From: Tubulanus polymorphus
Taxonomy: Eukaryota; Animalia; Nemertea
Direction: 5' to 3'
DNA: 64,000 nucleotides
Assembly: GCF_964204645.1 (NCBI RefSeq)
Contig: NC_134035.1
Location: forward strand, 13,176,451-13,240,450
Shown here: positions 6,925 through 38,228 of the stretch, in pieces
Layout: every line of letters starts with the position of its first letter
Position numbering within the stretch: the first letter of the stretch is position 1
Notes under the pieces: generated by a model
Database searches by the model: none
Seen by the model: only the letters and a program-made list of their open reading frames with translations
What the model was told of the DNA's origin: nothing
Program-made: the position numbers and the translations under genes

Positions 6925-8237
6925 CAGGGTGTCGTGCCGTAAGAGTCTTACGATGCCGTCAGGTACTCGATCCCGTCCTGCTCAAGGAGTAATACTCGGG
7001 TCCATGATGTCAAGGTTCCATTTTGTTGGCTAGTATTTTAGACTGTTTTAGATTGGAACATTCTAAAGCGTTAACCTACACTAATTGTGGGACTGAGTAA
7101 AAACCACTGTCTCAATTTATCTTTTTTTAACTGTTTGTAAATAAATAAATCACATTATTTTTACTCCACGTGTTGTTATAGGTTTGTCTTTATGTTCATT
7201 ATTAACCGTCTTTGTGTCTAATGTCACTAGGATCGTAGAGCAACCGATATCGCAGTGGAAATAACCTCTTCCAGAACTTCATGCTGACCTAATTCTAAAT
7301 AAAACCAATCGTTGCGTTGCGTCGAGAAATTGTAACGTCGTTAATCGGCTGCGTTTGTCGATGCCCCGCCCCCTCAGTTTACTGAACCGTTAAAACTATT
7401 GTTTCTAGTGAAAACCCGAAAGTAAACCTCACACTAGAAATTACACACAAAAATTTCGAAGATTGACTTTTAATATGGAACATGTTCACGTGTTTGACCA
7501 GTTTTTTTATATATTTGATGATCAGTTAAAATTAAGCGATTCTAGTACAAAATCAATTTCAGAGGCTGCGTTGAGAGAGAGAGACAGAGAGAGATAGAGA
7601 CAGGTATGAGAGGATTCCATGTTTCAGCGCGTGTGACGTCATTTCCGTCAGTTGAACACGCGCACCGGGCTTGTCACGTGACGTTAACGGCTGGACTCGG
7701 TGTAAATGGAGAAACATTTATCGATTATTCCCAGTTCTGAAAACAGAAAACAAATAAAATAGGCCTACATGTTAATATGATACCTGGACACGCGCCGAAT
7801 ACGTCCGAATTATACCGAACAATGCCGAAGTTTTGTTGTCATGCTTTCGAGACATTTTATGCTCGATATATACGCCACTGAACAGTAAGCCCGATCACAC
7901 AAAGTCACCGATATCTGTAGCACAAAATACATGGCGGTTTATTACAATATTGCCTCAAGTGCACGAGGCCACTATTTTGGCGAAACTAACTTGGTTCCTA
8001 TAGTTTGAGAGGGATTTTCGAATTTTGAATGTGATAAGGGAAAATCCAATATACACGTCCGCTTGGACATTGCGCATTTAGTGTCACTCTTAAGAAAATA
8101 ATCATTAAATAAATTCTGTAATGAATATATATGAAATATAGCGAAAGTGAGAGAAGTCGGTGACTCAAAGTAATCGGGCTCCATGAGATGAATTTGTCAC
8201 TGGATAGAGAGAAGTAGGTAAGACTTGCAGCGCAGAA

Positions 8238-9825: not shown

Positions 9826-10141
9826 TTTAAAGATTTGGCCCTTGATAACAGTTCATCCTTACTTTGTTTTCAACTTGTATGTCTTAACTCACAATGTGAA
9901 ACTGGATTCAGTTTATGAATGTAAGTTTCACTCTTAGATTTTAAGAGCTTTCTGTATTCGTTATCACAGTTGTGAGTTAGGATTTAACTTTGAAAACAAA
10001 CCAATTATAACTCAGTTTTCTGTAACTCAGAACTGTGGAGCTGGGTTGTCCCTGGTTGCCGTGGATGCTGAGAGGATGCTTCCACCCATGCTTATGTCCA
10101 TACAATCGATGATGCTACATGCTCGGACAAGCGTTACCTAT

Positions 10142-13100
10142 CTATTCCAGAACTCCTTCATCTGAAACAGAGCATGATTCAAACTTATCAAAGAACAAAA
10201 CAAAAAGTGATTTTGAAAAACCATTGAAGATCTGGACAAATGAATAAACTTCCGTAGCTTTTTTTTAGAAAAATGTAATCCTTCTCTTTTTTGTCTCTAA
10301 AAATTTTTTTCCATATAGAAAATCACTCTTTTTTCTACATCGTACGATTATTTGCATGATTTCTTAAATTGTTAATCTTTCTATTCCCTGATTTCACAAT
10401 TCAAAGTTTATCTATTAAAGTTCATTTTTCCCCACAAATAAAATGCTCTGGAAACATACAAACTTCTTCATATAGCTCAAAATAGGGAATAGAATATCAT
10501 ATCATTGTTAACTGACCTTTTAGACGGAGATATCGGAGAAAGTCTTTCATCATCGAGACACCTTGGACTTTATTATTTCTGTTTATATTTCGTGCGTTTC
10601 CCAATAGCCTTTTGTTCATGTGACCCATTCCTGAATAAACCAGAATAGAAATATATCGATTTTCGCTGAAAACTGAACTGTTTTGCGCGCGTCAGGAAAG
10701 GCACATATCATTTTACCAGGGCATTTGGTTTTATTAACTAGTTACATTTTGAGATACTGGTTTAACTTTACATTTACAAACGCTACCTCCCATTCTACTG
10801 CCTTATCATGTACAAAATTCGAAAAATTGTCAGCGCCGTGGAGTAGTGTTAACCACTGTATAGGGGACCGAAAATAGTGTTGATGATAAAGGCAAACATC
10901 GTCTTACAAAGCTCGATAATATAAGATACGTAGAAAAAAAACGATGAAAAGAACAAAACCGGTATACAGATGACAAGCAGATGAACAAGTATTAGTTTCT
11001 GAACTACAGTAAGAATCGGGTTTGTATCAATATCACATCTTGTCTGATATCAATAGTGATAAATACATGTTATTAATTAATCAACCACGTTGTCAATCCG
11101 TATTGGTTATAAGCGTCTAGCTAATTTACTGACTAACAGCCACGATATCTCGCTATCTGTGTTTATCGAATATTTGCGCTCTAATTAATGGTTATCTAGA
11201 ACACGAATAAATACTGCTATAAAGAAGTCATGTTTCCGACGAGCTGTTGATTAGAAGTTATTCCGTATAAACCGATAATTGACAGGTGTAGAGCCAGACT
11301 ACCTCACCTCACCTCTTCCCAGCAGCTCGGAGGTAAGATTCGACTCTTGGAATTAACTTCATTGAAAGTGAAATGAGATGAATCTGAGTCGAAGCCTTAC
11401 TCCACGGAACTGGAGCTAGTGGATGGTATCACCACCAAATAGTACTTGAAAATACGTGTATTAGATATAGCGGAGTAAATTCGGAACAGAATTCGACATT
11501 CGAGTCGGTGTTTGCGGCAAATGCAATATAGATTCATGATACTCATATGAATTACTTACCATATAACCAAGCTCCGGGTATCATTACATTTCCTTGTTGT
11601 CTTCTTTCAAAACCAGTCGCTAGAATTATTGTACATCATAATAGATCCACTTCAACAGGGCATTGGCAGTTTGTTAGTTTTACTCAATAGATAACTCATC
11701 GAAAATGAATTAATTGTATCTCAGAGTTAGCCCTAACTCACAACTGTGGAACTGAATCCTGAGTTCAGAGTTAGCCCTAACTCACAACTGTGGAACTGGA
11801 TCCTGAGTTCAGAGTTAACTCTAACTCACAACTGTGAAAATGTATCCTTATTAAGTTAAAAAACTATTTTAGAAATCCACAGAATTGTGATTTTACATAT
11901 TCTGATTGAAAATGTCGATTCAGAAGGATATTCGAAAGGAAAACGTGCAAATTTTGAAGATCCTAAAAAAATGTGACGTATGCGCACATTACGGTCTCTC
12001 GTACATTGCATTTAACAACGACAGATGTTGAAATTGGCACACGCGAGTGAAAGCGCCAAAAAGTGCTTTCTGAAAATGTCACCGCTAACACAGTAGGTAT
12101 GAAACTCGATATTTTGCATTATTCCGATAATGAATTCCCATTTCATATCGAAAAGACAAAAATGATGACAAACATCATCTAAAGATCAGTTATCAGTCAC
12201 GTGTCTAACTCTTTCTGTGGTTCCTGTATCAAGAGAACGTTTTGAGGCCTCGGAAAACAATAGAAAACTAGATAGATAAAACGAGCTGGATTTATACCCG
12301 AGATACAACAGGGAGCCGACTGATTGTACTTACACGGAAAATCATCTTCCACGTCCTATAGAAATAAAAAAAAAAGAAATAAAAAGTTAATAGACAAATG
12401 AAACGAAGTTTCAAAGATTGAATTTCATCATTTAAAGACTGCGGCGACCTTGCACTGGTTCAATCCCTAGACTACTGATCGTATGTCGTTATTTTTGTGG
12501 TTTTTTGTGGTTTTTTTTGTCATTTTCTAACAAAAAATAGAACAAAACTCACGTTACGGCCATGGTAGAAATGTGACACTGTGACGATCGAGAACAGATG
12601 ATATCTTTAAATAGATCACTAGAGATCATCGTCACATACCGTCCAGACCATGATCTGTGATAGTTCGAACGTCGCCGTGTCTTATGATTTTAATACTTGA
12701 TAAATAAAATTCATTCTTAATCCTTTAAATTCTGTTTTTAGCGCATTGGGTTCTTCTAAGAAATGTGGCCGTATAAAGGCGTGGCCAATTTCTGAGAGGT
12801 GAAGTGAATGCTCTTGTAGTAAGCAGTCATTGAAGTTGTTGACTCGACGCTCTCCAATGTCAGGTGAGATCAGATGAGATGTTCGCAGAATCATATTCCT
12901 CTGCGGGATGGTAGTAAAGAAAAATGTATTTTGTGTTGGTTGTGAAGGGATTTTATATAATAGTTTTAAGTGATAAAATTTTCAAGTGAAGACATAATAA
13001 TGATATATAGGGATTTATTCATTTATAAAGCGCTGGACCCAGTTCCATAAGTCACATCATTAGATACGAACTTACTCTAAACTCGCGATTTAGCTCTAAG

Positions 13101-14944
13101 CCGAATCTTAACTTACAACTGTGGAAATTGGTCCAGGGATCGGTTGCTGAAAAGTTGGTTAGATTTAACCAGTGGATAGTTGAAAAGTTCATCGTTCATT
13201 GCGGTGTCTATCGTTAGTTCATTATTTCTCCGCTATCAATATCCATGAAGATGTTAAATGAAGTTAAATGAAAAATGAATTATTATTATGATAACCAACG
13301 TTTGAGCAACCGGTCCTAGAACTTCAAAATAGTGTCTGCGCTTAAGCTTTACATGATAGAAATTTAAAAAAAAAACATTTGATTGAAAATATACAAGTCC
13401 AAAAATAGGTTTTAAGATGTGATCCTGAATCTATACTAATCCATCCTCCCTCGGCAGGGATTCGAACCTGATGGCATCACTAGACTCAGCCATGGTGGTA
13501 GTCTCGATGCCAACAGGCTCGAATCCGTGCCCGGGGAGGATGAAACTAATCGTACCTCTTTATTTATCTCATCGCTCTCCTACAAAACAAGTATATGATT
13601 TTACTAAGATTTATCGAAGTATGAGGGGTACACAAAAATAAGGTTTGGAGATACTGATATTAATCTCAGTATTTCACACAGTTAATGAGCTAAATCCACA
13701 GTTGACGATTTAACTGTTTATTCTGACAGTTTCAAAGTCTCGGCTAAACTTCATCATCAGAGAAACTAAAATAACATAATGATAAAGTATTAGATGAATG
13801 AAGTTAAGAAATAACATAATTATGTTATTTACGTTTCTTTAATGATGAAGTATAGTAAAAACTTCGAAACTATCAGAATAAACTGTTAAATCATCAACTG
13901 TATGGGTTTTATTCATGAGATATAACGGTGAACGTGTCTTTCTAGTGATACATTATTTGAAAATCATTAAGATGTTTAGTGAGCACAGATTACAGCTTTA
14001 AAGCTTCACAATTCACTCCTCTATTTGTCGTCATCTGATCGCAGATATTTGTGAGAGACAGCGACTCGTTAATGAAGTGTTGTCTGGGTGGGTGTATAGG
14101 AAATGAAGCGTATTGATAGCCGCATAGTTTCATTTCATTGACAGATACCGATCAGGAATGCGCCGATAGCCAGTGGTTATACATGGATATAAAACTACTT
14201 CTGAATATCGTATATACATGTATTTGAATTTGACCTGTTGATGTCGGTTTCAATCTACACGGTCTGGTCCAATCAAACAGACATTCAGGGGGCTATATGA
14301 TGCATAAGGCCCACATTATCGCCATTCCTGCAGTTTTCGATAGTCCCAGGCTTCAGTGCTTTACCTGAGATATCTAAAACTAACTACAAACACCAGACAT
14401 TAGACTTTTTTATCTACACACTTTCAAAAACTGTTCGTCCACACTTCATCTGTGTCGGAGGACTTCACCTGAGATATTTTCAATTGAAAATGAACTACAA
14501 ACACCAGACATAAGACATTTTATCAGCACATTTCCAGAGATCTGATCGTCCACACTTCACATGTGTTCAGTGCTTCACGTGTGTTCAGTGCTACACATGA
14601 AACATTTTCAATTGAAAATGAACTACAAACACCAGATCCCAGTTTCACAAAAAGGTTTAACTCATATCGATTTAATTTGTTCATGAATTCAAAGTATCTT
14701 AAATCGATTTAGGCCCTAATCCTTTTTGTAAAACTGGGCCAAGATATTAGACATTTTATCAGCAAACTTTAAAAAACTGATCATTCACATTTCACATGTG
14801 GTCAGTACTTCACCTGAGACATTCATGAATGAACAACTAAACTTTACTCAAACACGAAGCGGATATTTCACTTACTTTAGCGTGTGATAGCGACTGGTAA
14901 AAACAGCAAATCAACATCAAACAAAGGCTCGATTTTACAAACAT
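10142..14944 (-). CDS. Galanin-like neuropeptide precursor, 94 aa; exons 14944-14876, 12355-12334, 11619-11560, 10630-10517, 10161-10142
   Basis: Five exons with canonical splice sites and matching phases (0,1,1,1) give MFVKSSLCLMLICCFYQSLSHAK-DVEDDFPSTGFE-RR-QQGNVMIPGAWLYGMGHMN-KR-LLGNARNINRNNKVQGVSMMKDFLRYLRLKDEGVLE*: signal peptide, dibasic-flanked 19-mer, C-terminus resembling GMAP (EFLSFLHLKEAGAL). Confidence 0.8.
13036..13316. mobile_element. Two abutting Harbinger-like MITEs (13036-13133, 13137-13316)
   Basis: GACCCAGTTCCA..TGGAAATTGGTC, a CAG spacer, then GGATCGGTTGCTGAAAAG..TTTGAGCAACCGGTCC. Confidence 0.65.
13442..13542. mobile_element. Palindromic element with B-box-like arms (relatives at 29706-29760, 37019-37188)
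   Basis: CATCCTCCCTCGGCAGGGATTCGAACCTG ... CAGGCTCGAATCCGTGCCCGGGGAGGATG. Confidence 0.65.
13721..13764 (-). ncRNA. Minimal type I hammerhead ribozyme (left arm of inverted repeat 13685-13915)
   Basis: Minus strand UUCU-CUGAUGA-U-GAAGU(loop)ACUUU-GAAAC-U-GUC-AGAA: intact core, stems I and II pair. Confidence 0.65.
14350..14830. repeat. Degenerate ~120-bp tandem repeat interrupted by a MITE (~14636-14740)
   Basis: Recurrent AACTACAAACACCAGACATTAGAC..GTCCACACTTCA; insert with CCCAGTTTCACAAAAAGG / CCTTTTTGTAAAACTGGG ends. Confidence 0.75.
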
Positions 14945-16270
14945 ATCTGAAAATCAGTAAATAAAATATTCAACTGACGCCAGGTTTATTGTAACCCATC
15001 ACGATGACTCGAAACAACTTGGGATTTAATTGAAAAGAAACAGTTTCGTGAAAATGTGGGGTCCGCGTGTATGTGGGAACCAGGGAATCACATGAACCAT
15101 CGCCGTCTTTCATAATTCGACCTTCTCTACTCCTCGGGGTTAAGAAGTCTATCGTCGGGAAAAGATAATACTGAATATCGCCCAGGGTCTAGAAAAAAAC
15201 CATTTTTTTCGTAAAGGAGATCAACGGGTAAAATAAGAACACGTATTGTATGAAATCCCTTAACAAACGGATGTACCGTCGCGTGGTTGAGATTTGATAT
15301 TGCCTATTGTTCGAAAGATTCTTCGCTTTCGCGTAAAGTTTACATACAGCGGAAACGATTAAGAAAAATTCTCTCATTCGCTTGTGATTCCCTGGAAATC
15401 AAATCTGATGAATCAAATGCTGAAAACTATAGTGGCAAAGCAGCGGTAACGGGTTTTCTGCCGTATGCAAAATATGCGCGAGGTCAATCAAAATCAAGAC
15501 TAGTGAAATCTGTATGTATTGGGGTTAAGCAAAATCTTAGAAAATTTAATAGAAATTCGTGCAGTAGTTTAGAAGCCTTAGATTTTTACTGACCTATTAT
15601 TATCTGCTGGATAATCTGCTTGCGAAGGAAAAGGGTAATTATGATTATAACAACTGTAATGATAACAAATGGCAACAATGATTGTAATAATAATCTGGAG
15701 GAAAGCAATTATGGTTATCCGTGAAACAGCAGAAAACCCGTATAATCTTTGTAAATAAGATCCATTGATCTAAGTTCATTATCCGATCTTGAATAAGTTT
15801 ACTTTGTCCGTCGTCGTAGATTGCAAAAATTGAAAATTGTAAATCGTATATCGTTAATCTGATATTCACTTAACGAATGTCGTCGGCGCATAAACGATTT
15901 TTTAGCCGACATACGATTGAATTATATCCACACTGCGGGCACCCGTCCAATTTTACCTCATAACGCGGCGGACACCCGTCAAATGCACGAGTGACCAAAT
16001 TATCTAAAATATTCGGTATCAATCGATAGAGGTGACGTTACGAAACAAAGGTTAAAGAGTTTAAGGCGAACTTTCTTATAAAGGGAGATTCGCCTTAGGT
16101 GATTTCGCCTTAATTTGGGAATGGGCCAGGATAACCTACAACCTCCCGAGCTCTCTCCTTCACTCAACGCTTCTTCTTTCTCTCCCCTTTATCTTCCTTT
16201 CTCTCACCCTCCCATTCCCCCCTCTCCTCTTTTCTTTTCAACCGTCCCTTTCTTCCTTTCCTCCCCCTTC

Positions 16271-31660: not shown

Positions 31661-38228
<6,568 letters not shown>

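Follow-up and report, generated by a model that had tools for sequence, protein, structure and literature searches.

A 64,000-nucleotide stretch of the genome assembly deposited as Tubulanus polymorphus (NCBI RefSeq GCF_964204645.1, contig NC_134035.1, positions 13,176,451 to 13,240,450; hereafter the window, with positions counted from its first letter) carries on its minus strand a real, small, single-copy neuropeptide precursor gene. As every defining feature that could be tested in its sequence is present, the locus is a single-copy orthologue of the nemertean GxGH proneuropeptide, and the tail of its precursor resembles GMAP (galanin message-associated peptide) of galanin precursors. With a probability that we put at roughly 0.7, the GxGH precursor is homologous to galanin/GMAP precursors through this tail, and the GxGH family would probably belong to the galanin/GMAP lineage of precursors as a protostome branch that has diverged. 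The gene most likely spans 14944 to approx. 7470, with coding exons E1–E4 and a terminal exon at 7736-7684 (E5b), in which case the precursor most likely has 105 residues.

Receptor trees group protostome allatostatin-A (AstA) receptors with the vertebrate galanin and kisspeptin receptors, and in protostomes the place of galanin is usually assigned to allatostatin-A/buccalin. In the reviews and receptor papers searched, there was no protostome precursor with a GMAP-like part; the GxGH family is known, while its galanin-type reading appears to be unreported in the literature searched.

Family membership and gene model

The "GxGH peptide (MS peptide 5)" proneuropeptide family was published by Thiel et al. 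(2021, Mol Biol Evol; PMC8557429) with precursors from three Lineus species, Cerebratulus, Notospermus, Baseodiscus, the hoplonemertean Paranemertes and Tubulanus polymorphus (two isoforms), and was reported solely from nemerteans. Mass spectrometry (MS) of Lineus larvae gave a 21-mer between RR and KR, plus a 17-mer starting at a Gly after a single Arg, and both of these peptides have an oxidised Met and are unamidated; the Lineus peptide ends in ..HLN (PMC8557429). The first-pass annotation of the window, which was made from the letters alone, left to the literature whether such precursors had been described, and that publication describes them. The word "galanin" is absent from the main text of PMC8557429, and in the neuropeptide literature searched the name GxGH is found in no other paper and a link between galanin and a nemertean peptide in none.

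Short strings of our gene model match the GxGH entries of the precursor lists in PMC8557429. Residues 36-58 consist of RR, a 19-mer with PGAWLYGMGH, and KR, which agrees with the family motif P-G-x-W-[LI]-Y-G-x-G-H between dibasic sites; the C-terminus is of the non-amidated kind (..HMN-KR, with no Gly before KR), and the conserved C-terminal MM..F[LM].[FY]L[KR]L[KQ]E is present as MMKDFLRYLRLK followed by Glu. Common to the gene and the published T. polymorphus transcript are the leader ends, FPSTGFERRQQ.NVMIPGAWLYGMGHM.KR and MM..FLRYL.LK. The 19-mer is identical to the T. polymorphus entry in 17 of its 19 residues, and overall identity to that transcript is approx. 60% (by eye), which indicates that the gene comes from another species, or from a deeply diverged lineage, than the listed transcript.

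Five small exons joining in frame to a precursor with a peptide between RR and KR had been proposed beforehand, and their coordinates, frame and splice sites were all seen when the minus strand was read over 10000-15300. Translation of the join by a local script gives 285 nt and 94 amino acids, with intron phases of 0, 1, 1 and 1, three GTAAGT donors and one GTCAGT donor, and acceptors that are all pyrimidine-rich and end in AG. The product opens with a leader of typical kind, after which come a propeptide of acidic character, RR, the 19-mer QQGNVMIPGAWLYGMGHMN, KR and a tail that ends in MMKDFLRYLRLK and DEGVLE. Exon 1 (14876..14944; this and all further exons on the minus strand) holds the ATG and the signal peptide (residues 1-23), and the T. 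polymorphus transcript agrees with it at the start (MF.K) and at the leader end (..S.AK). Exon 2 (12334..12355) is a 22-nt micro-exon for DVEDDFP and the first base of a Ser codon, matching QEIDEFPS of the same transcript, while exon 3 (11560..11619) codes the propeptide end, RR, and residues 1-13 of the 19-mer with one further base, peptide coding beginning at 11599. Exon 4 (10517..10630) contains the end of the 19-mer (to 10614), KR and a spacer; the GMAP-like core then begins, and its first half, MMKDFLRYLRLK (10553-10518), precedes the GTCAGT donor in phase 1. The order of segments across the E1/E2, E2/E3 and E3/E4 joints is the same in the published T. polymorphus transcript, and by this sequence comparison exons 1-4 are corroborated by T. 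polymorphus cDNA.

Exons 3 and 4 have one genomic copy each, with no paralogue, in a genome of 268 Mb (77 contigs); this copy count and the MS of the Lineus orthologue uphold the earlier view of a genuine single-copy precursor with one non-amidated peptide between RR and KR. An independent DNA contig over 10000-11689 shows 21 listed substitutions and 2 insertions, with none in exons 3-5; exons make up 11.5% of this segment, and the variant avoidance (P ~0.07) is a weak sign of constraint. No splice junctions were seen, the three runs with the locus being contiguous genomic DNA through the introns, and a possible RNA run under the same species label contained nothing from the locus.

The terminal exon

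The fifth exon of the first-pass annotation (10142..10161), which codes DEGVLE and a stop, has a good acceptor and is without orthologue support. With the ends of heteronemertean and Tubulanus precursor tails as queries, a scan of the minus strand between 10516 and 7000 gave 7736-7684 as the top place, with a score of 25 against heteronemertean ESGALDKC.. and the next best place at 15. This proposed exon, E5b (7684..7736), codes ELGIIDKCFSIYTESSR and then a stop, with the second half of the core at 7736-7714. At its acceptor, 20 nt rich in pyrimidines close with CAG, the leftover G of exon 4 and the start of E5b open with GAA (Glu; phase-1 entry G/AA), so that the phase is correct, and an ATTAAA, which is a likely polyadenylation signal (7469..7474, minus strand), lies 209 nt past the E5b stop. 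Neither AATAAA nor ATTAAA occurs within 2.2 kb past the stop of the first-pass exon 5. After L-K or L-Q, all orthologues and GMAP have Glu, which E5b supplies too, and the first-pass exon 5 gives Asp; the DEGVLE tail is absent from all orthologue tails compared, and E5b matches the heteronemertean tails over E.G..DKC.

Because of the scan score, the acceptor, the phase, the ATTAAA and the Glu after L-K or L-Q, we took 7736-7684 as the conserved terminal exon, which it most likely is, although it falls outside the coordinates given before; its use in this species is predicted. DEGVLE, being orthologue-less and followed by 2.2 kb free of a polyadenylation hexamer, is probably not the conserved tail. 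The segment 10161-10142 is possibly an alternative terminal exon, or a decoy made of a chance acceptor and a short open reading frame in the last intron, with the conserved last exon 2.8 kb beyond the decoy acceptor.

The end of the listed T. polymorphus transcript, ENRVEPLED, resembles HRVQPLTS in another frame (+1, window 7702-7679) of the 3' part of E5b, with a score of 22. The comparison of tails suggests that in T. polymorphus, or in this isoform of it, a lineage-specific internal acceptor (~33 nt further in) or an indel removed the GMAP-like E.G..DKC segment. At the other end of the gene, the 10-residue insert of the T. polymorphus isoform seq1 sits exactly at the E1/E2 joint (PMC8557429). 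The best of 65 stop-free AG..GT segments against this insert is a 24-nt segment of intron 1 at 13579-13556 (shuffle p 0.035), a tentative candidate for a cassette micro-exon (13556..13579, minus strand) that would code ESDEINKE from phase 0 to phase 0 with a weak GTACGA donor, and which may correspond to the isoform insert.

Within 60 nt past the E5b stop, position 7634 has a perfect palindrome of the cAMP response element (CRE), TGACGTCA, and position 7675 an E-box, CACGTG; a CT-rich run comes after them. This block (7634-7680) could be a 3'-end regulatory block of the gene or the promoter of a neighbour. A CRE-like octamer (7/8 of TGACGTCA; 14975..14982, minus strand) also stands ~30 nt upstream of the ATG, with a stretch rich in T and A after it, and this may be a core promoter.

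Resemblance of the tail to GMAP

For the tail comparison, 20-residue cores were scored with BLOSUM62 against 20000 shuffles, with the tail taken to include E5b. The rat GMAP core is printed in PMC3516677, and fifteen vertebrate galanin precursors as well as Ciona Ci-GALP are printed in the supplement of PMC6753867; the cichlid prohormone supplement has no galanin entry. The corrected tail shares 11/20 identities with the gar GMAP core (BLOSUM62 56, P per position 4e-11), 10/20 with zebrafish (53, 1.9e-10), 8/20 with human (42, 3e-8) and 7/20 with Ciona (36, 5.6e-7). For gar this corresponds to P ~4e-9 per protein and z of 9.6, with 39 as the maximum among the 20000 shuffles, and after allowing for 1e4-1e5 prohormone windows the expectation is ~1e-4. 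With E5b, and dependent on it, the GMAP core F-L-x-[FY]-L-x-L-K-[ED]-x-G-A-L-D is found C-terminal to the peptide. The GMAP-like tail of the first-pass annotation is thereby borne out, and in a stronger form than it was first put forward.

The agreement extends to the family. Against the rat core, the scores are 34-42 for four heteronemertean tails and 27 for the T. polymorphus transcript; the positions invariant among the nemerteans (F, L, L, E) all carry the GMAP residue, and at 11 of 17 positions the GMAP residue is present in at least one nemertean. The agreement with GMAP is not circular, since E5b was found through nemertean orthologues and not through GMAP. In addition, the parts of the precursor stand in the order of preprogalanin, i.e., leader, short propeptide, dibasic site, one peptide, KR, spacer, core and short tail. 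We infer homology rather than convergence.

Mature peptide and intron positions

The alignment of the peptide to galanin that had been proposed earlier does not carry the same weight. Without gaps, the 19-mer has 3/13 identities with galanin 1-13 (BLOSUM62 score 9); when galanin 1-14 is slid over the protein, the best match falls elsewhere (shuffle p 0.15), and anchored at the N-terminal Gly the match has P ~0.005. The galanin signature GWTLNSAGYLLGP was sought directly after the dibasic site and is not there, Trp2 and Asn5, which are known to be important in galanin, being absent, and for this reason the peptide was not filed as galanin. By these scores its resemblance to galanin is at chance level and is no evidence by itself. 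The resemblance of LYGMG to AstA is not supported, as allatostatin-A/buccalin precursors hold several copies of Y/F-x-F-G-L/I-amide (PMC12509031), while the precursor in the window has a single peptide with no FGL motif and no amidation site.

The worm gene has one phase-1 intron in a Gly codon of the peptide (LYG/MG) and, with E5b, another phase-1 intron in the Glu codon (G/AA) right after LRLK. In vertebrates, the boundary of galanin exons 3 and 4 lies between galanin residues 13 and 14 (PMC12749109). In the anchored alignment the Gly of LYG/MG aligns with galanin residue 12, and the introns are offset by 5-6 nt, or one to two codons, so that on this alignment the peptide intron is near the vertebrate 13/14 boundary and not at the same site. 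As regards the tail, the first-pass annotation places a phase-1 intron of human GAL inside the Glu codon that follows HLK; if true, it would coincide with the worm intron in residue, position and phase, and this would be the strongest single argument for homology.

Proposed processing and candidate receptors

By the -3/-1 rule, the signal peptide would be removed after Ala22. Prohormone convertases would then cut at Arg36-Arg37 and Lys57-Arg58, a carboxypeptidase would trim the basic residues, and the N-terminal Gln would probably cyclise. The predicted product is one non-amidated 19-residue peptide, pQQGNVMIPGAWLYGMGHMN. Pyroglutamate-type modifications are reported generally in nemertean peptides (PMC8557429), and dibasic cleavage together with a free-acid C-terminus is seen in the Lineus orthologue, by analogy with which both are expected here. 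A 47-residue C-terminal associated peptide would be released as well, with a conserved helix-like core that is split by the phase-1 intron in the Glu codon; as in the debate over GMAP, the function of this core may lie in sorting or in a second signal.

The GxGH precursor would coexist with allatostatin-A precursors. In Lineus, three Gal/AstA/FLamide-type G protein-coupled receptors (GPCRs) and one kisspeptin-type GPCR have been listed, together with two AstA precursors and one of FLamide type (PMC8557429). Because of these receptor and precursor lists, the candidate receptor, by analogy, is the orphan kisspeptin-type GPCR or one of the three galanin/AstA/FLamide-type GPCRs.

Alternative explanations

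Several results weigh against a homology of the tail with GMAP. The core match amounts to ~29 bits, which is not significant database-wide and becomes significant only against known prohormones. The Pfam models Galanin (PF01296) and GMAP (PF06540) gave no match up to E 10, with the exons queried separately and the core split by an intron; a 37-residue phmmer query (exon 4) against 1.84 billion representative proteins gave no match, a word-indexed protein search with exon 4 gave none either, and an ESM Atlas search with exon 4 gave nothing useful. The mature peptide has no galanin signature, the precursor of the hoplonemertean Paranemertes has no GMAP-like core, and a search of the precursor collections of PMC8557429 with six LKE.G strings gave no GMAP-like tail from other spiralians. 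A family restricted to nemerteans also needs many losses, or divergence beyond detection, in the other protostomes. The joint between E4 and E5b was not observed in RNA, and the T. polymorphus transcript ends in its other short tail, which is not the GMAP-like frame.

It could thus be argued that the GxGH family is a nemertean invention and that its likeness to GMAP is due to chance, or to convergence on an amphipathic helix such as a sorting or processing motif. The restriction of the family to nemerteans, the string search, the chance-level peptide and the silence of Pfam on the exons all speak in its favour, and since the hypothesis was born of scanning very many windows there is a real look-elsewhere cost. 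However, the 11 of 20 residues identical to gar stand in the appropriate part of a precursor of the same architecture, the nemertean-invariant positions carry the GMAP residue, E5b, which improves the match, was identified from nemertean orthologues and not from GMAP, and the per-protein P of 4e-9 is still ~1e-4 after correction for 1e4-1e5 prohormone windows, so that we hold convergence or chance to be rather unlikely. A further objection concerns the gene model, as exon 4 might truly, or mainly, join 10161-10142, with the protein ending in DEGVLE and 7736-7684 unused or minor. The acceptor at 10161 is good and nearer, the short DEGVLE tail still fits the hallmark K-[DE]-x-G-x-L, and the related T. 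polymorphus transcript ends in a short acidic tail too; against this stand the lack of DEGVLE in any orthologue, the Glu after LK that is universal in orthologues and GMAP and fits E5b, where the first-pass exon gives Asp, the polyadenylation hexamer at +209 instead of none for 2.2 kb, and the fit of E5b to the heteronemertean E.G..DKC tails, which make this variant improbable. That the locus is not functional, being a chance chain of short open reading frames or a decayed copy, would agree with its lack of RNA support in this species and its absence from the protein collections searched, yet four strong splice-site pairs with an intact frame, an expressed orthologue that is ~60% identical (by eye) and shares 17/19 peptide residues, the single genomic copy and polymorphisms that avoid the exons leave such a possibility with hardly any credit.

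Significance

Taking homology of the tail as the preferred reading, we lean, at a little beyond even odds, towards the wider proposal that GxGH peptides are the missing protostome counterparts of galanin-type peptides. The last common ancestor of bilaterians would then have had a galanin/GMAP-type precursor beside an allatostatin-A/kisspeptin-type precursor, only the nemerteans, among the sampled protostomes, would have kept it recognisable, and its receptor would be a galanin/AstA-type GPCR or the orphan kisspeptin-type GPCR. If the tail is a true GMAP domain, the galanin precursor lineage predates the protostome-deuterostome split and a galanin-type precursor coexisted with allatostatin-A, in which case the equation of AstA with the galanin ligand needs revising, possibly towards AstA = kisspeptin. 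The proposal lends itself to testing, with short unmodified peptides, a Lineus peptide that is known to exist and few candidate receptors. For annotation, it is of relevance that none of the protein collections searched contains the gene.

Other features of the window and its surroundings

A second secreted precursor is present in the window at 31664-38228 (minus strand), with a leader and first exon at 38228-37767 and two paralogous terminal exons, each ending in an amidation site. The terminal exon at ~34511-34332 (minus strand) ends in ..KSFKNLLDAGR and a stop (..LLDA-amide type), and the one at ~31897-31664 (minus strand) in ..KEFEKLFKAGR and a stop (..LFKA-amide type); the precursor is not kisspeptin-, spexin- or AstA-like.

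At 20-40 kb before the window start, there are two intronless GPCR genes, L007:769-1764 (minus strand) and L009:4643-5575 (plus strand). One of these neighbours is aminergic-like, its best solved relatives being beta-adrenergic, octopamine and histamine H2 receptors (E 1e-31 to 1e-25), and the other is an orphan with a weak Srw-type Pfam match only and no solved relative; neither is of galanin type. An intronless gene for a 633-residue HSP70 lies at L002:1489-3390 (plus strand, contig C5), and its product has 94% identity with a Tubulanus polymorphus RefSeq protein labelled 'low quality' and 75-80% with proteins of molluscs, annelids and other nemerteans, which marks the genome as that of a Tubulanus-like palaeonemertean.

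The introns of the GxGH gene are rich in short interspersed repeats (window 9965, 11735-11835, 13080-13140, 13440-13560 and 14275-14960). One of these, with the core AACTCACAACTGTG, is repeated in tandem two and a half times at 11735-11835, the segment 13440-13560 holds a tRNA-like foldback element, and contig depth at the intron repeats exceeds that of single-copy sequence by three to four orders of magnitude.

Comparison with known systems

Within the GxGH family, the gene shares the signal peptide, the one dibasic-flanked peptide, the missing amidation Gly and the conserved tail, and it differs from the listed T. polymorphus transcripts in having the heteronemertean-type tail E.G..DKC, which they lack; gene structure and a link to galanin are not given in PMC8557429. 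Allatostatin-A/buccalin, accepted as the ligands of galanin/AstA-type receptors in protostomes, occurs in the same animals, the nemerteans, but is multi-copy and amidated and has no GMAP-like tail, and the gene in the window shares none of this organisation. Spexin, a member of the galanin/kisspeptin group, is similarly short, contains an aromatic-aliphatic-x-G segment and is coded across two exons, although it is amidated and its best ungapped score is 13.

Vertebrate preprogalanin is a precursor of ~105-125 residues with the same order of parts, one intron within the C-terminal third of the peptide (offset in the worm) and the GMAP core D/E-F-L-x-[FY]-L-x-L-K-E-x-G-x-L-D, to which the worm tail is matched in 8-11 of 20 residues. 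In contrast, the worm peptide has 19 residues, is unamidated, carries Gln-Gln before Gly and lacks GWTLNSAGYLLGP, and the worm gene has an extra 22-nt micro-exon. Ciona Ci-GALP, although it keeps GWTLNS, shows 7/20 core identities and, being from a chordate, has no bearing on protostomes, is likewise a single-peptide precursor of an invertebrate in which the peptide is followed by a D-F-x-L-F-L-x-V-K-E-S-G-x-L core; its K-E-S-G resembles the heteronemertean Q-E-S-G, and a G-x-G follows the aromatic residue of the peptide in both.

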